Assembly: GCF_006345805.1 (NCBI RefSeq)
Contig: NC_043026.1
Span: 9,300,001-9,364,000, forward strand
Origin: Octopus sinensis
Taxonomy: Eukaryota
DNA: 64,000 bases
Direction of reading: 5' to 3'
A program made the position numbers and the translations under genes. Of the stretch, positions 1,600 to 57,087 are shown in pieces (position 1 is the first letter of the stretch; the number at the start of each line of letters is the position of its first letter). The notes beneath the pieces are model-generated. The model ran no database searches, was not told the origin of the DNA, and saw only the letters and a list, made by a program, of their open reading frames with translations.

Positions 1600-2210
1600 T
1601 CCTTAGTGATCTATCCTGAACGCCTTACTTCCCTGGGCATGGACACATTGAAACTCCGACGTCTGGCAGCTGACTTGGCAGACACCCATAAAATTATTAA
1701 CCATCTTACTAACAATAACTCTGAGCACCTTTTCAAACTCCACCCGTCTAACACCCGTGGACATATTTACAAAGTCAGAAAACAGCACAGCTCCCATGAC
1801 TTCAGGAAACATTTTTTCACGCTGAGAGTTGCTGAAGCATGGGACAGACTGCCGGCATCAGTTGTTAGTTGTCGGAGCACTGCATCCTTCAAAACTTCCA
1901 TGCTTCCTGAGATTCGCCAATACTACACCTGATTTTCTCCCCTCCATACACACGCTGAAGCATGGAACAAACTGCCGGCATCAGTTGTTAGTTGTCGGAG
2001 CACTGCATCCTTCAAAACTTCCATGCTTCCTGAGATTCGCCAACACTACACCTGATTTTCTCCCCTCCATACACACGCAAGCATGTATCTGACTCATACA
2101 CTGTTCACTTCCTAGACATTTGTACATTGCTGCATATGCTTTATACGCACTTTCTGACAAGTTGTGGTGCACCTGAGCACTGTATACAATAATTTCATTA
2201 TTTTTTTATG
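1600..2210 (+). mobile_element. CR1/L2-group LINE 3' end (RT C-terminus + 3' UTR + (ATT)n tail) with one extra 123-bp unit
   Basis: ORF 1606-1932 LFKLHPSNTRGHIYKVRK..RKHFFTLRVAEAWDRLPASVV..STASFK matches the RGHxxK...FFxxRVxxxWNxLPxxVV...FK motif typical of CR1 ORF2 C-termini. Confidence 0.85.
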
Positions 2211-2460
2211 AGTGAAACAAGTACAAGAATAAAAGTATATACATATATACACATACATAATATACGTATACATGAACACAATATATAACACACACACACA
2301 TACATAATATATGTTTATATAAAAGAAGGGAAATGTTAAAGTTGGCATTTAAAAGGAGACAGGTAAAGAGAGAAGACAGTGAAAGAGAAGGACATATGAA
2401 GGATATGAAATAGGAAAGGGAGGGTTGTTATCATTATTATAAATTACTATTGTTAGATCA

Positions 2461-3290
2461 CTGCATCCTTCAAAACTTCCATGCTTCCTGAGATTCGCCA
2501 ACACTACACCTGATTTTCTCCCCTCCATACACACGCTGAAGCATGGAACAAACTGCCGGCATCAGTTGTTAGTTGTCGGAGCACTGCATCCTTCAAAACT
2601 TCCATGCTTCCTGAGATTCGCCAACACTACACCTGATTTTCTCCCCTCCATACACACGCTGAAGCATGGAACAAACTGCCGGCATCAGTTGTTAGTTGTC
2701 GGAGCACTGCATCCTTCAAAACTTCCATGCTTCCTGAGATTCGCCAACACTACACCTGATTTTCTCCCCTCCATACACACGCTGAAGCATGGAACAAACT
2801 GCCGGCATCAGTTGTTAGTTGTCGGAGCACTGCATCCTTCAAAACTTCCATGCTTCCTGAGATTCGCCAACACTACACCTGATTTTCTCCCCTCCATACA
2901 CACGGTGAAGCATGGAACAAACTGCCGGCATCAGTTGTTAGTTGTCGGAGCACTGCATTCTTCAAAACTTCCATGCTTCCTGAGATTCGCCAACACTACA
3001 CCTGATTTTCTCCCCTCCATACACACGGTGAAGCATGGAACAAACTGCCGGCATCAGTTGTTAGTTGTCGGAGCACTGCATCCTTCAAAACTTCCATGCT
3101 TCCTGAGATTCGCCAACACTACACCTGATTTTCTCCCCTCCATACACACGCAAGCATGTGTCTGACTCATACATTGTTCGCTTTCCAGGCATTTTTACAT
3201 TACTGCATATGCTTTATATGCACTTTTGACAAGTTGTGGTGCACCTGAGCACTGTATACAATAATTTCATTATTATTATTATTATTATTT
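2461..3290 (+). repeat. 123-bp minisatellite (~5.6 units) derived from a CR1 3' end, followed by the CR1 3' UTR and (ATT)n tail
   Basis: g(c/g)tgaagcatggaacaaactgccggc recurs at 2535, 2658, 2781, 2904 and 3027 (spacing 123); the tail is nearly identical to 2076-2205. Confidence 0.9.
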
Positions 3291-4230: not shown

Positions 4231-5483
4231 ATGGAAAAGAGTGAGAAACCAAAGGAACTGATTTTTCCAGAAGATAGTGAAAAAGGGAGACAAAAATTGT
4301 CACATGAGTGTGATGTGTGTAAAATGTCCTTCTCTCAAAAGGGTGACTTGGAAAGGCACAAAGGTATTCATACAGGGGAGAAGCCATTTCACTGTGACAC
4401 CTGTGGTAAATCGTTTTCTGTAAGTAGTAACTTAATTAGTCACAGACATAGCCATACTGGAGAGAAACCGTATCATTGTAATGTCTGTGGTAAATCATTC
4501 TCTGCAGCCAGTAATTTGACTTCACATAAGCGTATTCATACAGGGGAGAAGCCATTTCACTGTGACATCTGTGGTAAATCATTCTATCAAAAAAGTTACT
4601 TAACTACACACAAACGTATTCATACAGGAGAGAAGCCACATCAGTGTAACATCTGTGGTAAATCATTCTTTCAAAAAATCGGCTTGACTGCACACAAACG
4701 TCGTCATACTGGAGAGAAGCCTTATCATTGTGATGTCTGTGGAAGGTCATTCTCTGACCAAAGTGCTTTAAATTCTCACGTACGTCTTCATACAGGGAAA
4801 AGTTATTTCACTGTGACATCTGTGGTAAATCATTCTCACGAAAAGGTAACTTGACCACACACAAACGTCTTCATACTGGAGAGAAGCCTTATCACTGTGA
4901 TATCTGTGGTACATCATTCTGTTACCAAAGTGCTTTAAATTATCACATACGTGTTCATACAGTGGAGAAGCCATTCCACTGTGACATCTGTGGTAAAACA
5001 TTCCCTAGAAAATATAACTTGACTTTACACAAACGTATTCATACAGGGGAGAAGCCTTATCACTGTGACATCTGCAGTACCGCATTCTCTGATCGAAGTG
5101 TTTTACTTTCTCACATACGTGTTCATACAGGAGAGAAGCCGTTTCACTGTGACATCTGTAGCAAATCATTCTCTCAAAAATATAGCTTGACTACACATAA
5201 GCGTATTCATACAGGGGAGAAGCCTCATCACTGTGATATCTGCGGTAAATCATTCTCTGATCGAAGCGTTTTACTTTTTCACATACGTGTTCACACAGGA
5301 GAGACACCATATTCCTGTAATATCTGCGGTAAATCATTCTCACGCAAAAGGTCTTTAACTGATCATAAACATATCCATACAGGAGAGAAGCCATATCACT
5401 GTGTTATTTGTAGTAAATCATTCTCCGCCAGTACTACTCTAAGTCATCACAAACGTATTCATGCAGGAGAAACACCACATTAA
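4231..5483 (+). CDS. ZNF1: tandem C2H2 zinc-finger gene (14 fingers) with a 1-nt frameshift at ~4795-4800; pseudogene or sequencing error
   Basis: ORFs 4231-4854 and 4851-5483 join into one finger array if one G is added to acagggaaaagtta. A 15th finger starts with an in-frame TAA (TPH*CDTCGK..) and is split by a SINE. Candidate acceptor tgtttcag|a at 3899/3900. Confidence 0.85.
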
Positions 5484-5486
5484 TGT

Positions 5487-6012
5487 AATACCTATTTCTT
5501 TACTACCCACAAGGGGCTAAATATAGAGGGGACAAACAAGGACAGATATAGGTATTAAGTCGATTACATCGACCCCAGTGCGCAACTGGTACTTAATTTA
5601 TCGACCCTGTAAGGATGAAAGGCAAAGTCGACCTCGGTGGAATTTGAACTCAGACCATAACGGCAGATGAAATACCTATTTCTTTATTACCCACAAGGGG
5701 CTAAACACAGAGGGGTCAAACAAGGACAGACATAAGTATTAAGTCAATTACATCGACCCCAGTGCGCAACTGGTACTTAATTTATCGACCCTGTAAGGAT
5801 GAAAGGCAAAGTCGACCTCGGTGGAATTTGAACTCAGACCATAACGGCAGACGAAATACCTATTTCTTTATTACCCACAAGGGGCTAAACATAGAGGGGT
5901 CAAACAAGGACAGACATAAGTATTAAGTCGATTACATCAACCCCAGTGCGCAACTGGTACTTAATTTATCGACCCTGTAAGGATGAAAGGCAAAGTCGAC
6001 CTTGGCGGAATT
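5487..6012 (-). mobile_element. Head-less S1 SINE trimer (184-bp period) inserted into the last finger of ZNF1, with target-site duplication
   Basis: aatacctatttc starts at 5487, 5671 and 5855. Flanking direct repeat caccacattaatgt at 5473-5486 and 6013-6026; ZNF-like sequence resumes afterwards (gatacctgtggaaagtca...). Confidence 0.9.
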
Positions 6013-9029: not shown

Positions 9030-10090
9030 TCATCATCATCATCATCATCGTTTAACGTCCGCTTTCCATGCTGGCATGGGTTGGATGATTTGACTGAGGA
9101 CGGGCGAACCAGATGGCTGCACCACGCTCCAATCTGATCTGGCACAGTTTCTACAGCTGGATGCCCTTCCTAATGCCAACCACTCTGTGAGTGTAGTGGG
9201 TGCATTTACGGGCCACCGGTACGGGGGCCAGTTAGGTGGTACTGGCAACGACCTCGCTCAAATCTTTTTACACGTGCCACCGGCACAGGTGCCAGTAAGA
9301 CAACACTGGTAACGATCAAGCTCGAATGGTACCTTTTATGTGCCACCGGCACAGAAGCCAGTTAGCCACTCTGGCAAAGATCACGCTCGAATGGAGCCTT
9401 TTATGTGCCACCGGCACGGTAGGCAGTTATCCACTCTGGCAAAGATCACGCTCGAATGGAGCCTTTTATGTGCCAGCGGCACAGAAGCCAGTTAGCCACT
9501 CTGGCAAAGATCACGCTCGAATGGAGCCTTTTATGTACCACCGGCACGGTAGGCAGTTAGCCACTCTGGCAAAGATCACGCTCGAATGGAGCCTTTTATG
9601 TGCCAGCGGCACGGTAGGCAGTTAGCCACTCTGGCAAAGATCACGCTCGAATGGAGCCTTTTATGTGCCAGCGGCACGGTAGGCAGTTATCCACTCTGGC
9701 AAAGATCACGCTCGAATGGAGCCTTTTATGTGCCAGCGGCACGGTAGGCAGTTAGCCACTCTGGCAAAGATCACGCTCGAATGGAGCCTTTTATGTGCCA
9801 GCGGAACGGTAGGCAGTTAGCCACTCTGGCAAAGATCACGCTCGAATGGAGCCTTTTATGTGCCAGCGGCACGGTAGGCAGTTAGCCACTCTGGCAAAGA
9901 TCACGCTCGAATGGAGCCTTTTATGTGCCAGCGGCACGGTAGGCAGTTAGCTACAATGGCAAAGATCACGCTCGAATGGAGCCTTTCAAGTACCACCGGC
10001 ACGGTAGGCAGTTAGCCACTCTGGCAAAGATCACGTTCCGATGGTGGTCTTAGCACCCTACTAGCACGGGGCACAAGAGCCAGTAAGGCA
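9030..10090 (-). mobile_element. RTE 3' UTR copy containing a 65-bp minisatellite (~11-12 units, ~9300-10045)
   Basis: ccactctggcaaagatcacgctcgaatggagcc recurs at 9366, 9431, 9496, 9561, 9626, 9691 and onward; (CAT)n tail at 9030. Confidence 0.9.
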
Positions 10091-17065: not shown

Positions 17066-18617
17066 ACAAATTTTAATGAACTCTATCTGGAACAGTGGAA
17101 GTTGTATCACAGTTGAAATTCTGTAGCATTGGTTATGAGTTTTGCTGGAGAGTTAACTGTGGCTGGTCTAGTTTGTGTGCCTGGAGTTACCTTTATATAA
17201 AAGAATGACAAGAAGAACCAGGTAAATTCAATGCAACTATTATTTATTACAACCCCTTATAAAAATACATGGCAAATGTCTTACATATTGTGAAGTAACA
17301 GGTTTGGCAAGTTTTAACAAACTCTATCTGGAACAGTGGAAGTTGTATCATAGTTGAAATTCTGTAGCATGTTCATAGTTTGGTTCTGTGTGTTGGGCAG
17401 CATCTGTTGTTGTGATCTGTCCGTTGCTGTAGAGGAAGTACAAGTTTACCAGGCCAGAGAGAGAGAGAGAGATGAGGAATGAAGACAGAAACGGGTGTGC
17501 TGCCACAAAGGAGACACATGGTTACCCAGCCCGAGGGAAAAGCAGGAGAAGGAGATAGAGGGTGGGAGACAGCACGATGGAGATAGTGGCAAAATGATGG
17601 GCGTATTCACTAGGGAGGGGATTTGAACATAAATGGGGATCCTTGAGTAAGGGAAGAAAGAGATATAGATGGTGGCAAGGGCCAGGCCATAACCTTGGGG
17701 TTTCAACATCATAATATAAGGGACAGGATACTGAGTTCAATTTCCGCCGAGGTCGACTTTGCTTTTCATCCTTTTAGGGTCGATTAAATAAGTACCAGTT
17801 ACGCACTAGGGTTCATGTAATCGACTTAATCCGTTTGTCCCCTCTGTTTTTAGCCCCTTTTGGGTAGTAAAGGAATAGGATACTGCAAAGGAAGCATGAT
17901 TAGAGTGTAGGGGGTGTTGAGTGATGACAATCTGGGTATTATATAGGGTCAAGGGGCTACCGGATGGGAAGGATTGGGGGAGTGAGAGGTAGGCATGGTG
18001 TATGGAAGGAATGTGAAGAAGAGATGTAGATTGGTTTGTTCGTGGTAGGGTGTGTAAAAAGTTTTCTTGTTACATGTGGGTGGAAGACATAGGTTGAGGG
18101 CAAGCCAATAGCAATAATACAGTAAGACAGGGAATGGGGGTGGAACAGACAGGTCAGGACTAGCGGAGAGCAATGCTACAGTGAGACAGGGCAGGACTGT
18201 ATTTAAAATATCCGATCGTGGCCGTTTGCCAGCCTCGTCTGGCACCTGTGCAGGTGGCACGTAAAAAGCACCCACTACACTCACAGACTGGTTGGCATTA
18301 GGAAGGGCATCCAGCTGTAGAAACACTGCCAGATCAGACAACTTGGTGCATCTAGTGTCCACTCTTTAGAATTTAAACCAGCCATATCTGGCCCAAATAT
18401 TCTACCTATTTCATCATCAAAGTAGTCAGTCGGCTTCTTACACCTACCCTACAATGTCATTGTGAAAATACACAATCATATCATCAAAACTTGAAAGCTG
18501 TGGGTTAATGCATGACAAATTGAAAATTATGTGAATAAATAACCCTCACATTCGACAGAATAATCTGCATGGTAAAGGGTTCAGTCACCCCTTACAGATT
18601 ATGATTTAGCACAAATA

Positions 18618-20036
18618 TCAGTGGGATTGCTTCTTCCCCTGATGAACACGTTTGTGAGAAGTTAAGCTGCCATGTTGAGTGAATGACCTACCACAGATAT
18701 CACAAGAATATGGTGTCTCTCCTGTATGAATACGTTTGTGAGAAATGAAAGCACTTTGGTCAGAGAATGATTTACCACAGATATCACAGTGATATGGTGT
18801 CTCTCCAGTATGAATACGTTTATGAGTAGTTAGGCTGCCACTTTCAGAGAATGATTTACCACAGATATCACAAGAATATGGTCTCTCCCCTGTATGAATA
18901 CGTTTGTGTGTAGTCAAGTTACCTTTTTGAGAGAATGATTTACCACAAATGTCACAGTGAAATGGCTTCTCTCCTGTATGAACACGTTTGTGAGATTTTA
19001 AAAGGCTTTGGACAGAGAATGATGTACCACAGACATCACAGTGATAGGGCTTCTCTCCTGTATGAATACGCTTATGTGTAGTTAGATTCCTACTGAGAGA
19101 GAAAGATTTGCCACAGATGTCGCAGTGATACAGCTTCTCTCCTTTATGAATACGTTTGTGAGCAGTTAAGTGCCCACTTTGAGAGAATGATTTACCACAA
19201 ATGTCGCAGTGAAATGGCTTCTCTCCTGTATGAATACGTTTGTGAGAAGTTAAATACCCACTCTGAGAGAATGATGTACCACAGACATCACAGTGATAGG
19301 GCTTCTCTCCTGTATGAATACGCATATGTGTAGTTAGGTTCCTACTGAGAGAGAAAGACTTGCCACAGATGTCGCAGTGATACAGCTTCTCTCCTGTATG
19401 AATATATTTGTGAGCAGTTAAACACCCACTTTGAGAGAATGATTTACCACAGATGTCACAAGAATACGGTGTTTCTCCTGTATGAATACGTCTGTGTTTA
19501 GTCAGGGTACTACTGGCAGAGAAAGATTTGCCACAAATGTTGCACTGATATGGCTTCTCTCCTGTATGGAAACGTTTGTGAGCAGTTAAGTTCCCAATTT
19601 GAGTGAATGATTTACCACAGATATCACAAGAATATGGTGTCTCTCCTGTATGAATACGTTTATGAGTAGTTCGGTTCCTACTGGCAGAGAAAGATTTGCC
19701 ACAGATTTCACAGTGATATGGCTTCTCTCCTGTATGAATACGTTTGTGTGTAGTCAAGTTATTATTTTTAGAGAATGATTTACCACAGATGTCACAGTGA
19801 AATCGTTTCTCCTCTGTATGAATACGCTTGTGCATATTCAAGCGACCCTTTTCAGAGAATGATTTACCACAGATGTCACAATGAAATGGCTTCTCTACCG
19901 TATGAATACGTTTGTGCTTATTCAAGTTACCCTTTTCAGAGAAGGACTTTTTACACACATCACAGTCATGTGACAATTTTTGTTTCCCTTTTTTTTCTGG
20001 AAAAGTCAGATCCTTTAGTTTCTCACTCTTTTCCAT
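18618..20036 (-). CDS. ZNF3 (B-type): 472 aa, 16 C2H2 fingers
   Basis: Intact ORF, length 24 + 28x16; acceptor at 20402-20403, exon-1 donor at 23348-23353. Confidence 0.95.
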
Positions 20037-20609
20037 TATTCTTCTTTGAAAATCACAATATATATAAATATATATGTTTTCTTCTTTGTACTTCTATAGT
20101 CTTTTGTTTGCAAGTATTTCGACTGCTGTATTTCTGTCCAGTGTTACCTTTGTCCCAAAACTCGTTAGTAAATTTATCCAAGTTTAATTTGCTAAGAGAC
20201 ACATCTTGTAGACACTCCAGCCAGTGATGTCCAGAAGGTTTCCTAATAACACATTTCAGAGTAAATATATCAGAGGAATTCTGCCATAGATTTATAGAAA
20301 CAATCTTATATATCTGTTCTGTACAATATTTCCATTTTGGTCTTTAAAAGATGATAAATAATGAGAATGTATCTTCAGTTATGCCAATGTCATCTGATAT
20401 TCTGAAAGAATAAAGAAACAACAGTGTAAGATATAGAGGCTACTTAAAAAAACACAGATTCAACATTTCCATAAAGATAAACTCTAGAAATAAACATTTA
20501 CCTGAACAACAGAACTTTCTAATTTATTAATATTTACATCACAAAATCTTTTGTAAAACTAACATATTTCTAAATTCCAGTTACACATTCCTACTGCACA
20601 ACATTTATA

Positions 20610-20643
<34 letters not shown>

Positions 20644-21155
20644 AAGTTAATCCAAACAAGAAAACAAAAAGACAACAATGCAAGGATGTGGAACAAAGAA
20701 AGTATTATTGGGCGCTCAGGAAAAAAAGGGAAGAATGACGTTTCGAGCGGAGCTCTACGTCGGAAACATAGGAGAAGGAAAGATCCCGAGGTGGGAGGAC
20801 AGAGGGAAAAAAAATGCAAGTGGTCTTCACGAGGTCACATACTGAAAAGGTGGAAGTGGTAAACAAGAGGGAGCAGGTTTTCAAAGACAGGAGAGCGGAA
20901 TCAAAGAAGGAATGGTAAACAACGGTGTGCGAGATGACAAGGGTGTGTGTGTGAGTGAAGGCGTGTGTGTGTATTGTGTGTATATGGTGGGCGAAGGCTA
21001 GTGGCAAGCAGCAGTAGCGAGTCACAGATCAGAAACAGGAAGGAATGTGTGTGTGCGTGTATATGTCTCGTCTGTGTGTTTTGTTGTAGTATGTGTGTGT
21101 GTACGTGTGCATTTTTTTGTGTGTATGGCGAGTAACTGTGTGATATATATACGCT

Positions 21156-21193
<38 letters not shown>

Positions 21194-21899
21194 ACGTAAA
21201 AAGCACCATCCGATCGTGACCATTTGCCAGCCCCGTCTGGCACGTAAAAAGCACCCACTACACTCATGGAGTGGTTGGCGTTAGGAAGGGCATCCAGCCG
21301 TAGAAACTTTGCCAGATCAGACTGGGCCTGGTGCAGCCTTCTGGCTTCCCAGACCCCAGTTGAACCGTCCAACCCATGCTAGCATGGAAAACGGATGCTA
21401 AACGATGATGATGATGATGATATTGTGAAATTGATGAATAGGGGACTTATAGACCTCTTGTTTAAATGCCTACAAAAAGTACATCAGCTAAGCAAATGGC
21501 CTTCCCTAAATGCATTGAAACCATTATAACAGAATCACTGTTTCAGGAAATTATCGTCGTTCAAAGACAACAAAATAATAATAATAATTCGTTCGTTTAT
21601 TGGCCACAAGGGCTAACAAAAATCAATTAAAACATAAAGGGACAAAACACAGGACGAAAGTTACAAAGGGTTTTGTCCGTAACTATGTAGAAAACGAAAA
21701 TGAAAAAAAAAAAAACTGTGCTAACGACCCGGGGGGTGGGGGACTTTCAGAAAATTTACAAGATCCGATTTTTCCGTCATAAGTTAGTGTAAAATGGATT
21801 GCGAGGATGATCCGGTTCTTGACTGAAGAAGGCTTCCAATGACCCGTCCGTGCTTTTTGTATCGTCTATTTGGATGTTTTGCGTTCTTGTCCCATTTTG

Positions 21900-21945
<46 letters not shown>

Positions 21946-21947
<2 letters not shown>

Positions 21948-22760
21948 GGTGAATTGAAGAAATGGAGCTGAACGAAGATTGAACAGAAATCGTTTTATTT
22001 CATTCTACACGTGTTTCGAAAGGCACAATTTACCAAAATCCGATTGAATAAGGAGACCATATTGTGTCTTTCTCTTCAGGAAGAAATAGGAAATCCGTTG
22101 GAAAAAACAAAAACAGAACAGAGGCGGATCAAAACAAATCGAACTAGGCTCCTAAGAGCCCATGGCAAAACTGTTTATCAGTGTATGTTGAGAACCGGTG
22201 GTTGAAGATTTTAACGGGTCAGGCAGCGGTCATTCCTGTGGGTGAGGGTGTGTAGATGTTCTTTGTGACCGAGAATAAAGTTCTGACTATTTAAGGAATA
22301 TTGGATGTTTTATAAGGGGCGAGAAAAATCTACTTAGAGACAAGTGTGTGTTTACTGTTCTATATATGTGTGCTGGCGCAGGTTGGCAAGACCTCCGTCA
22401 AGCGGTAGAAAACATTTTATGTGTACGTGTGTGCGTTTGATCGCTCGGCTGTCAGTGGTTAAGCCGCTCTACACAATGGCTACTGCAGTAAGAACCGTTG
22501 GGTGGCAGAAAAAAATATATTATGTTTTATGTGTGCGTGTGTTCGTCTGATAAAGCCCTGTTTATCTTACAGGAGTAATTCCCCTTGCAGTGGTTAATCG
22601 TAATTATCTTAAAGGCTATTTCAGAATTTGTTACCAAGGGCTATGGGTGCAGGTATTATTTACCTCCAACCGTGCTGTCTTCTGCTGTGATTTTTGCTAC
22701 CAAGGTATCGGTCAAACTTTTGATTAATCTGCTACAAGATTATTCATCTTTCTATTTCAC
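21946..22760 (-). mobile_element. Penelope-like non-coding or degenerate insertion within a (TA)n microsatellite of the ZNF3 intron
   Basis: (TA)n on both sides (21905-21944, 22761-22790). The orthologous site in the ZNF9 intron (53546-53614) is an uninterrupted (TA)n. Carries a hammerhead motif. Confidence 0.7.
21996..22088 (-). ncRNA. Type-I hammerhead ribozyme, canonical core, all three stems paired
   Basis: UAUUUCUUC-CUGAAGA-GAAAG.A.CACAAU...AUUGUG.C.CUUUC-GAAA-CACGUG-UA-GAA(U)GAAAUA; predicted cleavage after GUA, between 22006 and 22005. Confidence 0.85.
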
Positions 22761-23028
22761 ATATATATATATATATATATATACATATATATTTCTTTTG
22801 TTTTTTACGGAATCCCACTTTTTGGTTATGGAGGATCCGATTCTGAGAAAACTTTTTTGAAAAATCGCATTTTCAAAATTTCATTTACCACCAGCCTCTT
22901 CACTTTTCACTTGAAAAAAAACAAACAAACATATTTTTGCCCTTAAAAACGGTGGGAGAAACATTTTCGGTAACAAAAAAATAAAATATTGTAAATATTT
23001 TCAAAGGAAAAAGTGTGATTTAAGGGAG

Positions 23029-23289
23029 ATTTGGCTGTTGTTTCTAGCAGATCCTAAGACAACCCTCCTCGTTTCACTTTCCCATCTTTTGAAGTTTTTC
23101 TCTTCATAAACACATTTATGATTTTTTTACAACCCTATTCTTCGCCCCTGGTTGCTTCTGTTTACGATTTAAAATATCGGTGAGTCTGAGGCCGTTTCTG
23201 GCATTTATCCACAGTAAAAACACAAGAAACGTGGGAAAATGATGGAAAGTGTAGAAGGTAGCCTCCATAGCTAGAAATAGCAGCCAAAT
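23029..23289. repeat. MITE-like segment with 20-bp imperfect inverted ends in B-type intron 1 (also ~42458-42719, ~53854-54115)
   Basis: atttggctgttgtttctagc (23029-23048) versus gctagaaatagcagccaaat (23270-23289). Confidence 0.4.
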
Positions 23290-23347
23290 GTCGCACAAAT
23301 CAAAGGACATCTGAGACAGGAAGTATTTAGAAATTAAATAGTTTAAT

Positions 23348-23520
23348 ACTTACGGAAATGTCTTTATAAAGGATGGTGTTGTTGTTAGAAGTGCGTCAGG
23401 TGGTTGAGAAATGTATTATAAATGTGTTTGGGAGTGAATTGAGAGAAATTCCGACTGAAATCAAGTTTGTTAAAATGAAGGAATTTAGGCGGAAATACGC
23501 TTAGTGCGCATGCGTATGAA
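23348..23520 (-). promoter_or_regulatory. Putative ZNF3 promoter and non-coding exon 1 (B-type)
   Basis: tgcgcatgcgta at 23505-23516; acttac|ggaaatg (donor, reverse complement) at 23348-23353; ~100-nt block nearly identical to 10510-10620. Confidence 0.65.
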
Positions 23521-23682
23521 ATACTGGTTTTTCTTCTTTTTTTCTTTTGTTTTTTAAAGATTTTGGTAGAAAACCAGAAATTTCGGGGAGGGTCAAGTGT
23601 CAGTCGATTTCATGGACCCGAGTAGTCAACTGGTATTTATTTTATTGAACCCTAGCAGAAAAATGTGAAAGGCAAAGTTTAT

Positions 23683-24120
23683 GGATCTTTTCTGTTTGAA
23701 CGGCAGTTTTTAACATAATTTCTAGGTAACTAAAAAGTTTTAAACTTCGTATACTGGTAGAATGTGTTACATAAAACATCTTTTCCTCTTGGCTTTATTG
23801 AGAAAATTCTGTAGTTTGTAAGATATTTCGTCTTTAATTTCAAGCATTTCGGCAATTTCAACCAATCACTCACGTCTATTGAGGTAAAAAAACATTCTGT
23901 GCCGTATGAATATGTCCCTCGTTTAAGAAACAGATTGGGGATCTTTTGTTTGAACGGCAGTTTTTAACATAATTTCTAGGTAACTAAAAAGTTTTAAACT
24001 TCGTATACTGGTAGAATGTGTTACATAAAACATCTTTTCCTCTTGGCTTTATTGAGAAAATTCTGTAGTTTGTAACATGTTTGTAAGATATTTGTAAGAT
24101 ATTTTCTTCAACGGCCGTTT
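23683..24120 (+). repeat. Interspersed repeat (same family as 1040-1260), internally duplicated, between divergent B and A promoters
   Basis: ggatcttttctgtttgaacggcag...ttttaaacttcgtatactggtagaatgtgttac occurs at 23683 and 23938. Confidence 0.7.
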
Positions 24121-24339: not shown

Positions 24340-24643
24340 TTGCTGGGGCGGGACACAATAAAATAAATACTAGTTGTCTACTGAGGTCCAGGTAAGCGAC
24401 TTAGCCCCCCCCCCAACACTTCCGCCGATATTGCTGGCGTTGTGCCAAAATTTGAAACCAATATTTCATACGCATGCGCACTAAACGTACGTCCGTCTCC
24501 ATTCATTACGTTACGACAAACATTTGAAGTCTGGTGCCAGAATTTCTCTCAATTCACTCCCAAACACATTTGTAATAGATTTCTCAACCACCTGACGCAC
24601 ATCTAACAACAACACCATCCTTTATAAAGACATTTCCGTAAGT
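24340..24643 (+). promoter_or_regulatory. Putative ZNF4 promoter and non-coding exon 1 (A-type)
   Basis: GC box at 24345, tacgcatgcgca at 24469-24480, donor gtaagt at 24638-24643; acceptor at 26774/26775. Confidence 0.65.
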
Positions 24644-27130
24644 ATTAAACAACGAAAGCATTTAATCTTTTAATACTTTGGTGTCTCAGATGTCCTTTGA
24701 TCTGTTCCACATTTGGCTGCTATTTCTAGCTATGGCGGCAACCTCCTACACGCTCCATCGTTTCTTCTTTAAGTTTGTTTGTTGTGTGTTTTAGGTGGAG
24801 AAATGTTCTTAAAATAAACTCCAACCACAGAAATGCTGAGAATCCAATGCTTTATTATAATTTATCGAACCCTTGTTTCTTGATATAAGGTAAGGGACAT
24901 AATTAGTAAGCGGGGCAAAATGAGTATTTTCCCGTTTCTTATAATTTGTTTGAATTTCTTATTTTTGTGAGTATTGCTGCATTATATTTTAGGACTGGGG
25001 ATGGCGGCGAGCTGGCAGAAGGGTTAACACCCGGGCGAAATGCGTGGACGTATTTCGTCTGCCGTTACGTTCTGAGTTCAAATTCCGCCGAGGTCGACTT
25101 TGCCTTTCATCCTTTCGGAGTCGATATAATCGACTTAATCCGTTTTTCTGGCCTTGTTTGTCCCCTCAGTGTGTAGCCCCTTGTGGTGAGTAAAGAAATA
25201 TATATTTAGGACTGGGAATTTGTCCTTATAGTTGTTGGAGTTGCAGGTCCTTTTTATTGTCAAGAAATTTTCCCTCAACTCTCAACCCGATAATAATCGA
25301 GGTTACTAATAAATTATCTGGATGATGTTCGGTGTTTAACCATCAATATTCTTCTCTCTCTTAGATTCCGGATCAATTTTTACCCCCCGTTTAGTGTCTA
25401 ATTTGGTAATTTTCAATTATCACAAATCATGACTAAGATGGGGCAAAATGAGTAATGACTACTTTCAATAATCTCTTGTTAGTGGATGGAAGCTCTCCGT
25501 CTGTAACGACGATGAGCACTCCACAAACACGTGTACCCTTAACGTAGTTCTCGGGGACATTCAGCGTGACACAGAGAGTGACAAGGCCGGCCCTTTGAAA
25601 TACAGGTACAACAGAAACAGGAAGTAAGAGTAAGAGAACGTTGTGGTGAAAGAGTACAGCAGGGATCACCACCATCCCCTGCCGGAGCCTCGTGGAACTT
25701 TAGGTGTTTTCGCTCAATAAACACTCACAACGCCCGGTCTGGGAATCGAAACCGTAATCCTACGACCGCGAGTCCGCTGCCCTAACCACGAAGAGATCTT
25801 GAAGAAACTGTTGATGATATTTTATGTTGATTTTTTCACCCCATTTATTCGATATTCATTAATTTCACATCATTTGCAATTTTCTCTGATTCTCTTTCAT
25901 TTGAATTCGATACTTGAATAGCTTTTTGCATTTCTGATCTTTAAGATGTCGAAGGATAGATATTGATGTGTTTGAGTATTTGTTTTCAAATGTAATTCTG
26001 GATAATTTGAAGAGACAATTTCACCTTTTCTTGCCTCTGCCAAATTTCTCTTTCTACACACTCATAGAGAACAATGATAATTTCCTGAAATACTGATTCT
26101 GTTATAATGTTTTCAATGCATTCAGGGAAGGCCATTTGCTGAGCTGATAAACTTTTTGTAATCATTCGTGGAATCTCCTCATGGGGCAAAATGAGTAATG
26201 ACTATTTCCAATAATTTTTTCTCTTTATGGAGTTAAAGAGAAGAAATTGTGAGCTGTTAGGTAACTAGTCACAGACATACATTTTCTTCAATATCCTCTG
26301 GCCTTGTGAATGGATTTGGGAGATGGAAACTGAAGGAAGCCCAATATATATGTGTGAGTGGGTGGGTGTGTTGTCCTCCCACCCCTTCAACACTTGACAA
26401 ACAGTGTTGGTGTGTTTATGTCCCCATAAACTTGTGGTTTGGCAAAAGTGGCTGATAGAATAAGTGCTAAGCTGAAAAAATAAGTCCTAGCATTGATTCT
26501 ATTGACTGAAGCCTTTAAAGTTGGTGCTCCAGCATGACCACAGTCAAAACAACTGAAACCAGTAAAAAAGTGTGTGTGTATTTATGAATGTGGAGCTGGA
26601 GTTTAGAAATATTTTAGCTTCAAACAGGATTTTGTGATGTAAATACTAATAAATTAGAAAGTTCTGTTGTTCAGTTAAATGTTTATTTCTAGAGTTTATC
26701 TTTATGGAAATGTTGAATCTGTATTTTTTTAAGTAGCCTCTATATCTTACACTGTTGTTTCTTTATTATTTCAGAATATCAGATGACATTGGCATAACTG
26801 AAGATACATTCTCATTATTTATCAATTTTTTAAAGACCAAAATGGAAATATCGTACAGAACAGATATATAAGATTGTTTCTATAAATCTTTGGTGGAATT
26901 CCTCTGATATATTTACTCTGAAATGTGTTATTAGCAAACCTTCTGGACATCACTGGCTGGAGTGTCTACAAGATGAGTCTGGTTGCAGATTGAACGTGGA
27001 TAAATTTAGTTGTTTTGTGACAAAGGTAACAGTGGCCAGAAATACAACAGTTAAAATATTTGTAAACAAAAGACTACAGAAGCAAAAAGAATAAAAAAAG
27101 AAGGTATATGGTGAAGTTGAAGGAAAAATA

Positions 27131-34005: not shown

Positions 34006-34695
<690 letters not shown>

Positions 34696-40869: not shown

Positions 40870-42173
40870 TAGATATTATCCAGTTAATGAAACACTTCGG
40901 ACTTAGTATAACTATAGACACTAACCTGACGGTTGTCAATTTCTTAGACGTTTCCTTAGATCTTAATAATAATATTTATAAGCCTTATAGGAAGCCCAAT
41001 GATAGACTAAGTTATATTAATGTAGGTTCATGCCATCCCCCTATAGTATTCAAAAATTTAGTTAAAAATATTAGTAAGAGGATTTCTAGCCTCTCATCTA
41101 ATGAGGACATCTTCAATAGCGTTGCCCCAGTTTATAATAAAGCTTTAAAAGATAGTGGTTTTAGCGAAAAAATAAAATATACACCTATCACTAGCCCAAC
41201 AGTAAGGAAAAGGAATAATAGAAATAGGAAGGTCATCTGGTTTACGCCCCCTTACTCACCCGAGGTGGCCTTCAATATAGGTAAATATTTCCTAGCACTG
41301 ATAGATAGACATTTTCCAGTTAACCATGCTTATAGGAAACTCTTCAATAGACACAATTTAAAAATTAGTTTTAGTTCAACTACCAATTTTAAAAACATAA
41401 TCAATCATAACATACAAAAACCACGAGAAGAAAACAGCTGTTCATGCAGGAATAAAGAATTGTGCCCGCTAAATGGAGCTTGTATGTCCAAGACCATCAT
41501 ATATGAAGCTACCGTAAACTCTATAACCACTAAAGACACCGTTTCGACGAAGAAATACGTGGGCTTACAGAGGGTAATTTCAAAGCCAGGTTCAATAACC
41601 ACACTTTGAGCTTTAGGCACTGGAACAAAAGAAAAGCGACACAATTATCCAATCATATTTGGTCTTTAAGAGATAAAGGTGTCGATTATAACATACAATG
41701 GAAGATTTTGGCCAGATGTAAGCCCTATACTAACGGCAGCGGAAGGTGCGGTTTATGCGACATGGAGAGATGGCTTATCTGGAAAAGCAGCTTAGACCCT
41801 ACCACATGTCTAAATACAAGGACAGAGCTTTTCGGATCATGCCCACATGTGACTAAATTTCTGTTACGTTTTTGGTCCCCTAAAGAAAACGGATAGAACA
41901 TGCTTTCTGTGTTATGTCCCAAGAAGAATTTATATATTTTTATATAATTTTATATATTTTTATGTATTTTTATAATTTTTATGACGAAAAATGCGAGCGA
42001 TGTATAAGTACGCAAGCAAAGCAGAGTTATAACAGAGTAATTTCCCTTCATTTTTAACGGTATTTTTTCATAACGTTTTCAAATAGCCAGATAACCGAAG
42101 AGATGGTGTTGTGGATTTCCACTTCGGCATCTGAAACTCAGAGTTTTATCTTGACTACCGAGTAATGTAACAT

Positions 42174-42175
<2 letters not shown>
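40870..42175 (+). mobile_element. Penelope-like retroelement, 5'-truncated: RT C-terminus, GIY-YIG-type endonuclease, 3' UTR with hammerhead
   Basis: VNFLDVSLDL..YKPYRKPN..HPP..RISSLSS..YNKAL..IWFTPPYS, then SCSC..CPLNGAC..IIYEATV..KYVG..NH..LSNHIWSL..IQWKIL..C.LC. Frameshift near 41570; ends in (TA)n. Confidence 0.85.
42084..42157 (+). ncRNA. Hammerhead motif in the Penelope 3' UTR (core U4->C variant)
   Basis: UAGCCAGAUAA-CCGAAGA-GAUG..GUGGA/UCCAC..CAUC-U-GAAA-CU-CAG-AG-UU-UUAUCUUGACUA. Confidence 0.6.
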
Positions 42176-42222
<47 letters not shown>

Positions 42223-50393: not shown

Positions 50394-52232
50394 TCAGTGG
50401 GATTGCTTCTTCCCCTGATGAACACGTTTGTGAGAAGTTAAGTTGCCACGTTGAGTGAATGACCTTCCACAGATATCACAAGAATATGGCTTCTCTCCTG
50501 TATGAATGCGTTTATGTGCAGTCAAGCTACCTTTCTGAAAGAATGATTTACCACAAATGTCACAGTGAAATGGCTTCTCTCCTGTATGAATACGTTTGTG
50601 AGATTTTAAAACACTTTGGAAAGAGAATGATTTACCACAGATATCACAAGAATATGGTCTCTCCCCTGTATGAATACGTTTATGTGCAGTCAAGCTACCT
50701 TTTTGAAAGAATGATTTACCACAAATGTCGCAGCGAAATGGCTTCTCTCTTGTATGAACACGTTTGTGAGATTTTAAAACACTTTGGACATTGAATGATT
50801 TACCACAGACATTACAGTGATATGGCTTCTCTCCCCTATGGAAACGTTTGTGAGAAACTAAGTTGCCACTTTGAGAGAATGATTTACCACAAATGTCACA
50901 AGAATATGGTGTTTCTCCTGTATGAATACGTCTGTGTTTAGTTAAGCTACTACCGGCTGAGAAATATTTGCCACAGATGTTGCACTTATATGGCTTCTCT
51001 CCTGTATGGAAACGTTTGTGAACAGTTAAGTTCCCACTGTGAGAGAATGATTTACCACAGACATGACAGTGATAGGGCTTCTCTCCTGTATGAATACGTT
51101 TGTGAGCAGTTAAATACCCACTTTGAGAGAATGATTTACCACAGATTTCACAGTGAAATGGTGTCTCTCCTGTATGAACACGTTTATGAATAGTTAACTT
51201 ACTACTAGTAGAGAAAGATTTGCCACAAATATCACAGTGAAATGGCTTCTCTCCTGTATGAATACGTTTGTGAGCAGCGAAGTTCCCACTTTGAGTGAAT
51301 GACTTACCACAGATATCACAAGAATATGGTGTCTCTCCTGTATGGATACGTTTATGAATAGTTAGCTTCCAATTGGCAGAGAAAGATTTGCCACAAATAC
51401 CACAGTGAAATGGCTTCTCTCCTGTATGAATACGTTTATGAGGAGTTAAAGCACTGTTGCGAGAGAATGATTTACCACCGATGTCACAGGAACATGCGAT
51501 CTCACCTGTATGAATCCGTTTGTGAGAAGTTAAAGCACTCCTTTGAGAGAATGAATAACCACAGATATTACAGGAGTACGGTTTCTCTCCTGTATGAAGA
51601 CGTATGTGAGATTTTAAAATGCTTTGGTGAGAGAATGATGTACCACAGACATCACAGTGATAAGGCTTCTCTCCTGTATGAAGACATTTGTGTCTTATCA
51701 AGTCATTTTTCTGAGAGAATGGTTTACCACAAATGTTACACTGATGTGGCTTCTGCCCTGTATGGACACGTTTGTGATAATTTAAAGCACTTCTATAAGA
51801 GAATGGTGTACCACAGATAACACAGTGATAAGGCTTTTCTCCAGTATGAATACGTTTGTGTGTAGTTAAGCTATTCCTGTGATGGAATGATTTACCACAA
51901 ATGTCACAGTGAAATGGCTTCTCTCCTGTATGAATATATTTGTGTGAATTTAAATCACTTCGGTCAGAGAATGATTTACCACAGACATTACATTGATAAG
52001 GCTTCTCTCCAGTATGAATACGTTTGTGTGTAGTCAAGTTATTATTTTGAGAGAATGATTTACCACAGATGTCACAGTGAAATGGTTTCTCCCCTGTATG
52101 AATACGCTTGTGTATATACAAGTGAGCCTTTTGAGAGAAGGACTTTTTACACACATCACAGTCATGTGACAACTTTTGTTTTCCCTTTTCTTCTGGAAAA
52201 GTCAGATCCTTTAGTTTCTCACTCTTTTCCAT
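50394..52232 (-). CDS. ZNF9 (B-type): 612 aa, 21 finger units (finger 9 broken, CDIGG)
   Basis: Intact ORF, 24 + 28x21; acceptor at 52599-52600, donor at 54173-54178. Confidence 0.95.
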
Positions 52233-53551
52233 TATTTATCTTTGAAAATCACAATATATATATATATATATGTTTTCTTCTTTGTACTTCTATAGTCTTT
52301 TGTTTGCAAGTATTTCGACTGCTGTATTTCTGTCAAGTGTTACCTTTGTCCCAAAACTGGTTAGTAAATTTATCCAAGTTTAATTTGCAAAGAGACACAT
52401 CTTGTAGACACTCCAGCCAGTGATGTCCAGAAGGTTTACTAATAACACATTTCAGAGTAAATATATCAGAGGAATTCCACCACAGATTTATAGAAACAAT
52501 CTTATATATCTCTTCTGTACAATATTTCCATTTTGGTCTTTAAAAAATTGATAAATAATGAGAATGTATCTTCAGTTATGCCAATGTCATCTGATATTCT
52601 GAAATAATAAAGAAACAACAGTGTAAGATATAGAGGCTACTTAAAAAATACAGATTCAACATTTCCATAGAGATAAACTCTAGAAACAAACATTTACCTG
52701 AACAACAGAACTTTTTAATTTATTAAAGTTTACATCAGAAAATCTTGTGTGAAGTTAACATATTTCTAAATTCCAGTTACACATTCTTACTGCACAACAT
52801 TTATATATGTGTGTGTATATATATATATATATATATCACGTAAAAAGCACCATCCGATTGTGGCCATTTGCCAGCCTCTTCTGGCACGTAAAAAGCACCC
52901 ACTACACTCACGGAGTGGTTGGCGTTAGGAAGGGCATCCAGCCGTAGAAACTTTGCCAGATCAGACTGGGCCTGGTGCAGCCTTCTGGCTTCCCAGACCC
53001 CAGTTGAACCGTCCAACCCATGCTAGCATGGAAAACGGATGCTAAACGATGATGATGATGATGATATTGTGAAATTGATGAATAGGGGACTTATAGACCT
53101 CTTGTTTAAATGCCTACAAAAAGTACATCAGCTAAGCAAATGGCCTTCCCTAAATGCATTGAAACCATTATAACAGAATCACTGTTTCAGGAAATTATCG
53201 TCGTTCAAAGACAACAAAATAATAATAATAATAATAATTCGTTCGTTTATTGGCCACAAGGGCTAACAAAAATCAATTAAAACATAAAGGGACAAAACAC
53301 AGGACGAAAGTTACAAAGGGTTTTGTCCGTAACTATGAAGAAAACGAAAATGAAAAAAAAAAAAAAATTGCGCTAACGACCCGGGGGGTGGGGGACTTTC
53401 GGAAAATTTACAAGATCCGATTTTTCCGTCATAAGTTAGGGTAAAATGGATTGCGAGGATGATCCGGTTCTTGACTGAAGAAGGCTTCCAATGACCCGTC
53501 CGTGTTTTTTGTATCGTCTATTTGGATGTTTTGCGTTCTTGTCCCATTTTG

Positions 53552-53617
<66 letters not shown>

Positions 53618-54172
53618 CTGTTTTTTTTACGGAATCCCACTTTTTGGTTATGGAGGATCCGATTATGAAAAACATTTTTTTGAAAAATCGCATTTTCAAA
53701 ATTTCATTTACCACCAGCCCCTTCACTTTTCACTTGAAAAAAAAAACAAACAAACATATTTTTGCCCTTAAAAACGGTGGGAGAAACATTTTCGGTAACA
53801 AAAAAATAAAATATTGTAAATATTTTCAAAGGAAAAAGTGTGATTTAAGGGAGATTTGGCTGTTGTTTCTAGCAGATCCTAAGACAACCCTCCTCGATTC
53901 ACTTTCCCATCTTTTGAAGTTTTTCTCTTCATAAACACATTTATGATTTTTTTTCAACCCTATTCTTCGCCCCTGGTTGCTTCTGTTTACGATTTAAAAT
54001 ATCGGTGAGTCTGAGGCCGTTTCTGGCATTTATCCACAGTGAAAACACAAGAAACGTGGGAAAATGATGGAAAGTGTAGAAGGTAGCCTCCATAGCTAGA
54101 AATAGCAGCCAAATGTCGCACAAATCAAAGGACATCTGAGACAGGAAGTATTTAGAAATTAAATAGTTTAAT

Positions 54173-54345
54173 ACTTACGGAAATGGTTTAAAAAAGGATG
54201 GTGTTGTTGTTAGAAGTGCGCCAGGTGGTTGAGAAATGTATTATAAATGTGTTTGGGAGTGAATTGAGAGAAATTCCGACTTAAATCAAGTTTTTTCAAA
54301 TGAATGAATGGAGGCGGAAATACGCTTAGTGCGCATGCGTATGAA
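54173..54345 (-). promoter_or_regulatory. Putative ZNF9 promoter and non-coding exon 1 (B-type)
   Basis: acttac at 54173-54178; tgcgcatgcgta at 54330-54341. Confidence 0.65.
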
Positions 54346-55255
54346 AAACTGGTTTTTCTTCTTTTTTTCTTTTGTTTTTTAAAGATTTTGGTAGAAAACC
54401 AGAAATTTGTGGGAGGGTCAAGTGTCAGTCGATTTCATGGACCCGAGTAGTCAACTGGTATTTATTTTATTGAACCCCAGCAGAAAAAAAGTGAAAGGCA
54501 AAGTTTATGGATCTTTTCTGTTTGAACGGCAGTTTTTAACATAATTTCTAGGTAACTAAAAAGTTTTAAACTTCGTATACTGGTAGAATGTGTTACATAA
54601 AACATCTTTTCCTCTTGGCTTCATTGAGAAAATTCTGTAGTTTGTAAGCTATTTCCACTTTAATTTCAAGCATTTCGGCAATTTCAACCAATCACTCTCG
54701 TCTATTGCGGTAAAAAAAATATTCTGTGCCGTATGAATATGTCCCTCGTTTAAGAAACAGATTGGGTTTTGTTGTTGTTATATATATATATATATAATGT
54801 GTTGAGTATTAAAGGAAGTAGTGAGTACTTAGTATGAAAGATTAAGAAAGTGGGAGAGACTGAAAAAACGTGTTAACGATACGAGATACTTTATTAGACT
54901 GCGCGTTGTTGTACAAGGTATATCTTTGTTGTGGCGGGAAACTGACTGATTGTCCTTGTATCAAGGGAGACAATAGGCAACGTTAATTGTTCATGTTCCT
55001 TTTTTTTTATTTATCTGTATCTACAGGGAATAATTATTCGTCGTCCACTTTTTGTGGTTTTATTATTTTGTAGTGTTGAATTCCGTAGTTGTGCTGTTTT
55101 TGTTTTTTCATGCGTGTTTGTTGACTTTGGAAATATATTTTCATAATCTAATTCTTCTGTTATGCGAACGTGTTCGTTTGTTTTAAGAATATGTTGTCTA
55201 TCTCGTTTGACTGTATTACCTTCCTCTGTTATTACTAAGTATGAACGAGGTTGCT

Positions 55256-57010
55256 CTAGTTTTTTTTAACTATTTTGCCCCTTCTAAACCAATTGTTGTT
55301 AAACTTAATTCTAACCGTGTCGTGTGGTTTTAACTCTGGGAGTTCTGTTGTAATGTTTGATTTCTTCTTTTCGTGAGGCCTGATACCAATTTTGTCGTGT
55401 AGTATGTTTGGGAGATTTGTTCGCAATGTTCTATTCATTATTTGATTTGCAGGGGATGGTGCACCATTTTGTAATTTAGTCGTGCGTAATGCTAAGAGCG
55501 CTAATTGAGGTTCTTCCCCACTTTTGAATGCCTTTTTTAGCGTCTTTTTTATTATCTGTATATTTCTCTCAACCATGCCATTCGCTTGATGATAATGCGG
55601 GCTTGTCTTCGTGTGATGAAAATGCCAATTTTTTGCAAATTTTTTGAATTCAGCCGAATTGAATTCAGGACCGTTGTCACTTACAACTGTTTGCGGAATT
55701 CCGAATTTAGCAAAAGTTTCTTTTAATTTTTTGATTACGGTTTTTGAATGGCAATCATTTATTTCGTGTAGATCAAAAAATCTTGTTGTATAGTCAATAA
55801 TTGTGACATACGAATTTCCAGACAGATGAAATACGTCTGTACCCACTTTGGTCCATGGTGTAGTAGGTATTTCATGATTTATTAGTGGTTCGGCTGGTTG
55901 TTGGTTTTTGTAGTCGATGCAGTATGAGCATGTGTTAATCATGTCTTTGATTTGAGCGTTAATGCCGGGCCAATATATACATTCCTTCGCTCTCTCTATG
56001 CATTTTTCCATACCCATGTGTCCGATATGTATTTCCTGTAGAGCTTCTCTACGTAATGACTTAGGTACAATTATTCTTGAACCTTTTAGAACAAGACCAT
56101 TGACGATTGATATTTCATCACGAACGGAGACGAATGGTTTGATGTTTATTGCTATTTTGTGTTTTAGGGGCCATTCTGTTCTTGTATATGTGATGAGTGT
56201 CTGTAGTGACGGGTCGTCTGCAGTGGCTTCTTTATACTCGTTTAATTTAGTGTCGGTTATGGGGTAATTTTTTATTACTGCATGTATGTGCGATTTCATA
56301 TCTTCGTCTGATACTTCTGGAGTATTTTGCTTAAGGTATGCACGTGATAGGGTATCTGCAACAACTGATTCTTCACATTTTTCTATTATGTCGTTTGTGT
56401 TGGACGAATTTATTTTTGAAATTCTCTGAATTAGGTTCAGATCTTTAGCTGTCTTTGCATCTACAACTGCGTGTGAGTTTGTTTTTGCAACAATGAATTT
56501 TATTTGCTTTGATAATTCTTTGTATTTAATGACTGCTGTGCATTTTCCTAGCACTTTTATAGCTGTGTTATTGTAAGCTGATAATCGAGTTGAGGTTTTT
56601 TGCAGTTGTGGTTTTGGAATTATAGTTTTATATTCTCTGAATGGCAGTACGGTTACGTCTGCTCCTGTATCTATTTTGAATGTTACATTCGAGTTGTTCA
56701 CTTTTAGTTCGACCGTCCAAATGTCTTTTGGAGTCTTGAACTTTTCGATTTTGTGCACGCGGGAATTATTTGCAGTGATCATTTCGAGTGCATGTGTATC
56801 GTCATCTGATTCATCGTCGGTATGTATCTCTACTTTATGTACACATTTTCTTGATTTGCCCATTTTTGCATAGTGTCCTTTTTTTCTTGCATTTTTCACA
56901 TGTCTTGTGAAATGCTGGGCATTTATTTCTTTTGTGATTATAACCACAATAGTGACAGTTAGTGACGTAGTGTTGACTTGGCGCTTGAAACTTCGCAGGC
57001 TTTCTGTCAC
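55256..57010 (-). CDS. Gypsy protease-integrase fusion ORF (584 aa), no RT
   Basis: KIDTGADVTVL protease; VVADTLSR (RNaseH end) directly after the PR linker; HIGHMG..CSYC zinc-binding motif; D..SDNGPEF..NGMVER rve core. Confidence 0.85.
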   Translation of the reverse strand: MTESLRSFKRQVNTTSLTVTIVVIITKEINAQHFTRHVKNARKKGHYAKMGKSRKCVHKVEIHTDDESDDDTHALEMITANNSRVHKIEKFKTPKDIWTVELKVNNSNVTFKIDTGADVTVLPFREYKTIIPKPQLQKTSTRLSAYNNTAIKVLGKCTAVIKYKELSKQIKFIVAKTNSHAVVDAKTAKDLNLIQRISKINSSNTNDIIEKCEESVVADTLSRAYLKQNTPEVSDEDMKSHIHAVIKNYPITDTKLNEYKEATADDPSLQTLITYTRTEWPLKHKIAINIKPFVSVRDEISIVNGLVLKGSRIIVPKSLRREALQEIHIGHMGMEKCIERAKECIYWPGINAQIKDMINTCSYCIDYKNQQPAEPLINHEIPTTPWTKVGTDVFHLSGNSYVTIIDYTTRFFDLHEINDCHSKTVIKKLKETFAKFGIPQTVVSDNGPEFNSAEFKKFAKNWHFHHTKTSPHYHQANGMVERNIQIIKKTLKKAFKSGEEPQLALLALRTTKLQNGAPSPANQIMNRTLRTNLPNILHDKIGIRPHEKKKSNITTELPELKPHDTVRIKFNNNWFRRGKIVKKN

Positions 57011-57087
57011 TTCCGCCTTGTTCGTTTTGATGTCTGGATTGCATATGGCGAGTTATTTGAGTTTTGACGCCTTTTCTGTCGTGTTGA

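Follow-up and report, generated by a model that had tools for sequence, protein, structure and literature searches.

The window, by which is meant the whole 64-kb stretch of Octopus sinensis DNA that was analysed, holds a cluster of about nine C2H2 zinc-finger genes, distributed over both strands between 4231 and 60210. The clustered genes have a conserved non-coding first exon, a 5′-UTR intron with conserved splice sites and a single exon for the finger array, and some of their promoters lie head to head, e.g. 23353-23520 (minus) and 24455-24763 (plus). The stretches between the zinc-finger genes contain tandem arrays, at 9274-10035, 1831-3158 and 5483-6012, whose repeat periods are 65 bp (11.7 copies), 123 bp and 184 bp. 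The window also contains an LTR-retrotransposon fragment (55001-57913), with a protease-integrase ORF at 55256-57010 (minus) whose best protein match is from Octopus vulgaris; two O. vulgaris loci contain copies of this element with 96-97% identity at the DNA level. Short repeats of the window are common to an Octopus bimaculoides locus at 84-91%.

A hammerhead ribozyme motif lies within an insertion in the predicted 5′-UTR intron of one zinc-finger gene, ZNF3. The features of this intron and of the corresponding paralogous sites are as follows.

23353-20402, minus strand: predicted 5′-UTR intron of ZNF3, with GT/AG consensus splice sites, hosting both (TA)n insertions in the sense orientation
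21945-22760, minus strand: non-coding insertion of 816 bp, absent from both paralogous loci
21905-21944, no strand: (TA)20, the target half at the 3′ side of the 816-bp insertion (Tandem Repeats Finder and junction alignment)
22761-22792, no strand: (AT)16, the target half at the 5′ side of the 816-bp insertion (Tandem Repeats Finder and junction alignment)
53557-53615, no strand: empty site in the closest paralog, an unbroken (TA)n with both flanks contiguous
42178-42220, no strand: unbroken (TA)n in a further paralog, where the right flank alone is homologous to the ribozyme locus
20644-21160, minus strand (gene-sense): second insertion, 517 bp, with its empty site at 52816-52836 by self-comparison

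The donor of the ZNF3 intron (CC/GTAAGT at 23353) is kept in 5/5 paralogs that cover the site, and the pyrimidine-rich acceptor (TTTCAG/ at 20402) in 8/8 paralogs. The finger exon ORF at 18618-20036 encodes a 16-finger C2H2 protein. Since the splice sites are conserved, the ribozyme is sense to a well-supported predicted 5′-UTR intron, and the proposal of the initial annotation that it lies on the same strand as the predicted ZNF3 transcript is borne out by the paralogs. An exact look-up of three zinc-finger ORFs of the window returned no record, and a homologue search with the ZNF3 ORF was swamped by generic zinc-finger proteins.

Self-comparison of the window showed that 20000-23950 and 52196-54773 are 96-97% identical except for two locus-specific blocks, 20644-21160 (517 bp) and 21945-22760 (816 bp). 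Both blocks have (TA)n on either side, and the paralog shows one unbroken (TA)n in place of each, at 52816-52836 and 53557-53615, respectively. The earlier statement that the related gene lacks the ribozyme and retains an empty (TA)n site is thus correct, with the microsatellite unbroken at both 53557-53615 and 42178-42220; the compared introns are paralogous, however, not orthologous as had been stated. In the third paralog (42130-42220) the homology ends exactly at the (TA)n and the left side is unrelated, which suggests that the same microsatellite was hit by another insertion or rearrangement.

The 816-bp insertion is non-coding, with stops throughout all three sense frames and no reading frame. 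Searches within it detected no tRNA or tRNA-like head, no other Rfam family and no poly(A) or simple-repeat tail at its 3′ end, and neither a tandem nor an inverted copy was present inside or beside it. In the orientation of the ribozyme the cleavage site falls at position 755 of 816, leaving 61 nt to the 3′ junction with the (TA)n. No second copy of the insertion turned up in the window, nor in a BLAST comparison with 268 kb from Octopus loci, so its status as a member of a repeat family depends on the O. bimaculoides relative described below. A homologue search with a 64-aa antisense ORF that spans the ribozyme, intended to reveal gene calls on other copies, gave no candidates. A scan of metagenomes with the pattern CTGANGAG-N(40-70)-CGAAACACGTGTA returned six matches, none of which (0/6) had stem I or stem II, and all six are thus attributed to chance. 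The first bases of the insertion, GUGAAAUAGAAAGAU (22748-22760), match the sequence that follows the cleavage site, GAAUGAAAUAAAACGAU (21990-22005), both read on the minus strand, at 12 of 14 positions and at the expected place; the alignment score falls short of significance (p about 0.05), and other places score equally well. A unit that started at its self-cleaved end would resemble this pattern.

On the minus strand, 22088-21996 reads as a complete type-I hammerhead motif with the following elements.

22088-22080, minus strand: 5′ strand of stem I, UAUUUCUUC, which pairs with the 3′ strand GAAUGAAAUA (GAA-U-GAAAUA) at 22005-21996, minus strand; 9 bp with one bulged U
22079-22073, minus strand: catalytic core CUGAAGA, as read from the sequence
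22072-22061, minus strand: 5′ strand of stem II, GAAAGACACAAU, which pairs with AUUGUGCCUUUC at 22029-22018, minus strand; 11 bp with one A/C mismatch
22017-22014, minus strand: GAAA box
22014-22007, minus strand: palindrome of helix III, ACACGUGU
22008-22006, minus strand: cleavage triplet GUA, with the cut predicted between 22006 and 22005

The core comprises C3 U4 G5 A6 N7 G8 A9 and G12 A13 A14, together with an A15.1-U16.1 pair and an N-U-H triplet, and is surrounded by three helices of which helix I is open, the layout of a type-I hammerhead. The first pair of stem II is G10.1-C11.1 and its loop is 31 nt long; the stem begins directly after A9, leaving no unpaired nucleotide between A9 and 10.1. 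Helix III consists of 2 bp closed by an ACGU tetraloop in the monomer versus 8 bp between two copies. The annotated core, the 9-bp stem I with its bulge, the 11-bp stem II with its mismatch and the palindromic stem III can all be read at 21996-22088. The label "canonical" is wrong, given a monomeric helix III of just 2 bp, a stem II too long for loop-loop contact and an Rfam score below threshold. Canonical motifs have a helix II of about 4 bp, in contrast to the 11-12 bp of the octopus motif. A contact between the loops of helices I and II is needed for fast cleavage at physiological Mg2+, and no such tertiary contact is available in the octopus motif, where helix II of 11-12 bp carries the 31-nt loop and there is no loop 1.

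The 3′ strand of stem I includes a hexamer AAUAAA (21995-22000, minus), a few nucleotides past the cleavage site and in the sense of the gene. It is possible that this hexamer is a cryptic polyadenylation signal carried in by the insertion.

A custom descriptor composed of the core boxes and minimum helix lengths, applied to both strands of the 64-kb window, matched the motif at 22088-21996 and nothing else. When relaxed to allow minimal hammerheads and a bulge following A9 as well, the descriptor again gave 22088-21996 as the sole strong match, with one weak additional match at 34027-34149 within a zinc-finger array. Among 300 dinucleotide-preserving shuffles of the window none reached the observed helices, and loose matches arose at 0.037 per window. 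With the relaxed descriptor a further 300 shuffles yielded chance matches at 0.55 per window, while a palindromic helix III of at least 6 nt appeared in 0/300. Rfam returned nothing for the whole window at gathering thresholds, and a search of 1.1 kb at E ≤ 10 brought up no hammerhead. When 121 nt were submitted, the best family was RF00163 (Hammerhead_1), on the correct strand and over the full model (1-45), with a score of 14.8 bits, which is below the cut-off of 34, and E = 0.46. The shortfall goes together with a 51-nt insertion in the loop of helix II.

In folding calculations for a single molecule, the minimum free energy fold (-13.0 kcal/mol) is favoured over the hammerhead fold when the latter is enforced (-11.7 kcal/mol), the two pairs of helix III have a pair probability of about 5%, and the 106-nt region is no more stable than shuffled sequence (z = +0.86). 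Co-folding of two copies gave -39.3 kcal/mol versus 2 x -13.0 kcal/mol, a gain of about 13 kcal/mol, with formation of the 8-bp intermolecular ACACGUGU helix. According to these models the window motif is of a dimer-dependent hammerhead design. Neither the strict nor the relaxed descriptor found a second hammerhead copy in the 64-kb window that might serve as partner. As a solitary copy without a stable helix III, the motif in this intron is expected to cut the ZNF3 pre-mRNA weakly if at all.

A relative was found when the 268 kb of Octopus loci were scanned for hammerheads. The O. bimaculoides locus L001 contains a head-to-head inverted pair of hammerheads, at 18345-18427 (minus) and 18464-18565 (plus), with (TA)n at both outer sides. 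The pair has the CUGAAGA core of the window motif and a 9-bp stem II whose large loop is rich in A and T, and it shares GAAACACGUGUA with the window motif, apart from a C-to-U change within GAAACACGUGUA in one arm. Its stems I and II are unlike the window copy in sequence and yet retain their pairing. As these stems differ, what L001 and the window have in common is limited to the catalytic core, helix III and the cleavage triplet, and the L001 relative shares with the 816-bp element just the ribozyme architecture and the target. The inverted fragments of L001 (18297-18668) are 96% identical over 144 nt. Between the cleavage site and the (TA)n lies a T-rich tail of about 50 nt in the left arm versus about 130 nt in the right arm.

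The extra tail of about 80 nt on one L001 arm resembles the one-sided tail described for Penelope-like elements (PLEs). The T-rich sequence CTGTTCTGTTTTTGTTTT occurs just upstream of the hammerhead in the window (22103-22120) and just downstream of the hammerheads in L001 (18562-18579), and a shorter TCTGTTC also follows the cleavage site in the window. CTGTTCTGTTTTTGTTTT could be a shared recognition element or simply low-complexity sequence.

The second insertion in the ZNF3 intron, 20644-21160, belongs to a repeat family. Four relatives with 71-81% identity were found in O. vulgaris loci: L008 (25659-25865), L010 (16514-16721 and 8258-8467) and L013 (25922-26100). The family has a common 3′ end, ...GTTTGGATTAACT, which adjoins (TA)n in 4/5 copies, and 5′ ends that are variably truncated. 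Its members carry a minimal hammerhead-like motif, CYGAYGA-N-GAGCUCCGCUC-GAAAC-GUN, in which an unpaired nucleotide stands between A9 and 10.1. Two copies, L008 and L010b, have canonical core boxes; since L010b has G at position 17, L008 is the one copy of the five whose motif, with its cleavage triplet, is canonical throughout. In the window copy the motif (20737-20763) is decayed, with two core changes. Three of the five copies have CCGA in place of CUGA, so that CUGA could be a product of CpG decay rather than the ancestral form. The hammerhead-like motif of this family is put forward tentatively. The similarity between the 517-bp and 816-bp insertions is confined to GT-rich low-complexity matches.

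The most probable explanation of the 816-bp insertion, with a likelihood of roughly three in four, is that the motif is the hammerhead of a non-coding retroelement fragment, likeliest a 5′-truncated piece of a PLE terminal repeat or a solitary PLE-dependent retrozyme unit, as judged by comparison with published features of PLE families. That the motif is a real hammerhead of a mobile element is held more firmly than the specific assignment to PLEs; both the PLE machinery and the lack of activity are parts of this reading that we infer. The hammerhead lies 61 nt from the 3′ junction and combines a ACACGUGU helix III with an 11-bp helix II and a G-C pair at 10.1/11.1, and the target is a (TA)n that is split here and unbroken in two paralogs, with L001 also flanked by (TA)n. 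The second (TA)n insertion of the intron, whose family has a defined 3′ end, variable 5′ truncation and a minimal hammerhead-like motif, fits this reading too. No ORF for a telomerase-like reverse transcriptase and GIY-YIG endonuclease is present in the 816 bp, and no PLE-type Pfam domains were found in the scanned non-ZNF ORFs of the window. Without this ORF, the copy would have to be a truncated or non-autonomous derivative. Pseudo-LTRs, i.e., partial tandem or inverted copies, are likewise missing in and beside the 816 bp; the L001 relative is an inverted pair. The initial annotation had cited Penelope ends as known context for hammerheads. Rather than a mere comparison, a PLE is most likely the actual source of the octopus motif.

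According to the PLE reading, an RNA bearing the ribozyme near its 3′ end would have been reverse-transcribed into a nicked (TA)n microsatellite, with the PLE reverse transcriptase and GIY-YIG endonuclease supplied in trans from elsewhere. The 816-bp insertion would postdate the segmental duplication from which the zinc-finger paralogs arose. In the native context of the ribozyme, two neighbouring copies would pair their palindromic ACACGUGU sequences into an 8-bp helix III and form a double hammerhead, which would process multimeric transcripts of the element. The intronic copy alone would presumably be a near-neutral passenger.

It is unlikely that the 816 bp represent a hammerhead-bearing element unrelated to PLEs, SINE-like or otherwise of non-LTR type, that was mobilised by different machinery. 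Such an origin would account for the lack of any PLE protein remnant attached to the insertion and for the missing bulged nucleotide that is typical 5′ of stem II, and the likeness to PLE terminal repeats is one of published features. A SINE-like element is, however, at odds with an insertion that has no tRNA-like head and no poly(A) or simple-repeat 3′ tail, and the dimer-type helix III, the position near the 3′ end, the (TA)n targeting and the inverted pair at L001 match the features of PLEs and retrozymes (PMC4209133; PMC8557442).

The initial annotation suggested that the ribozyme could tune the output of ZNF3. As a working regulator it would cleave the nascent ZNF3 pre-mRNA within the intron before splicing, and the output of the gene would be lower than that of ribozyme-free paralogs. 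Conserved intronic hammerheads are established in amniotes, where they occupy orthologous positions and adopt stable monomer folds, and the octopus motif resembles them in being a sense-strand hammerhead within an intron of a protein-coding gene. The well-supported predicted intron, the intact catalytic core, the well-formed stems I and II and the existence of paralogs without the ribozyme also accord with such a function. The amniote hammerheads are conserved and monomeric, whereas the octopus copy is recent, paralog-specific and in need of a partner: it is absent from both paralogs, and its helix III is formed at about 5% in the monomer. The motif thus does not have the characteristics of an exapted, conserved intronic hammerhead. 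In addition, the 64 kb hold no partner for helix III, the 11-bp stem II with its 31-nt loop rules out the loop-loop contact for physiological Mg2+, and monomers of PLE-type motifs with this design show no activity in vitro (PMC4209133). Tuning of the zinc-finger gene by the ribozyme is unsupported and unlikely, and the working regulator that it would require is very improbable.

A broader scheme can be drawn, in which at least two Octopus families of small non-coding hammerhead retroelements home to (TA)n, and sense copies in 5′-UTR introns of the expanded C2H2 clusters are cleaved when they pair in trans with abundant element RNAs, reducing individual genes in a paralog-specific manner; this is highly speculative, and it would be surprising if it proved true. 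Chance resemblance in AT-rich intron sequence is scarcely credible. In its favour, loose descriptors match 0.04 to 0.55 times per 64 kb according to how strict they are, the Rfam score stays sub-threshold and the fold is no more stable than those of shuffles. Against it, neither helices as long as those observed nor a palindromic helix III of at least 6 nt occurred in any shuffle (0/300 each), the motif occupies exactly the place within a (TA)n insertion, close to the 3′ end, that it has in PLE-type elements, and the independent locus L001 has the same core and helix III with different stems that still pair.

A PLE or retrozyme origin would mean that a striking intronic ribozyme motif is explained by the biology of mobile elements, not by gene regulation. 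The two insertions within a single zinc-finger intron provide evidence for (TA)n-homing hammerhead elements in Octopus, and the filled site together with the empty paralogous site constitutes a clean natural test locus for the effects of a solitary copy on host transcripts. Otherwise the finding is as expected from published work on PLEs and retrozymes, such motifs being anticipated in a PLE-rich invertebrate genome.

Other known systems can be compared with the octopus element as well. Newt satellite 2 and Schistosoma Sm-alpha (RF00163) have the same core and a palindromic helix III formed between two copies; they differ in their 4-bp helix II, their conserved loop contacts and their occurrence in tandem satellite or SINE-like repeats. 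The non-LTR retrozymes of animals are non-coding, carry a type-I hammerhead and occur as scattered monomeric copies, often in introns, with a presumed dependence on PLE machinery (PMC7229834; Li et al. 2026, bioRxiv 10.64898/2026.07.22.740005). They derive from PLE terminal repeats, monomers are frequent, their consensus lengths of 51-972 bp include the 816 bp of the octopus insertion, and about 43% of copies overlap introns in Xenopus (10.64898/2026.07.22.740005). Retrozymes are defined by tandem units, each with a type-I hammerhead, and by linear and circular RNAs of unit length, in contrast to the octopus element, which is a single unit with one hammerhead and no tandem structure.

The resemblance to PLEs extends to both the ribozyme and its genomic setting. 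In PLEs the hammerheads are located in terminal repeats (pLTRs), near the 3′ end; their helix II is long, the G10.1-C11.1 pair is conserved, and helix III is a short palindrome that implies a dimeric active form (Cervera and de la Pena 2014; PMC4209133). Most of them either stand alone in truncated copies or lie close together as pairs of opposite strand; in vitro, no cleavage could be detected for single motifs, and that of dimers was weak (PMC4209133). Craig et al. likewise described a hammerhead near the 3′ end, inverted 5′-truncated copies and one-sided tails, and identified (TA)n as a preferred target in several PLE clades (PMC8557442), and Frangieh et al. showed that cleavage favours AT-rich sequence and that reverse transcription is initiated internally (PMC11167929). 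The repeat annotation of O. vulgaris has PLEs as an order, young copies included (PMC13282606). The octopus copy differs in having neither a reverse transcriptase-endonuclease ORF nor a second terminal repeat, and its motif lacks the unpaired nucleotide between A9 and 10.1 that characterises minimal hammerheads of PLEs and has an unusually large stem II loop of 31 nt. It agrees with PLE hammerheads in its type-I layout, long helix II, G10.1-C11.1 pair, palindromic helix III, absence of a loop-loop contact and position near the 3′ end, as well as in the occurrence of solitary copies or, as in L001, close inverted pairs, and in the AT-rich or (TA)n target (PMC8557442; PMC11167929). With this assignment, cephalopods would be added to the animals whose (TA)n-targeting retroelements carry dimer-type hammerheads.
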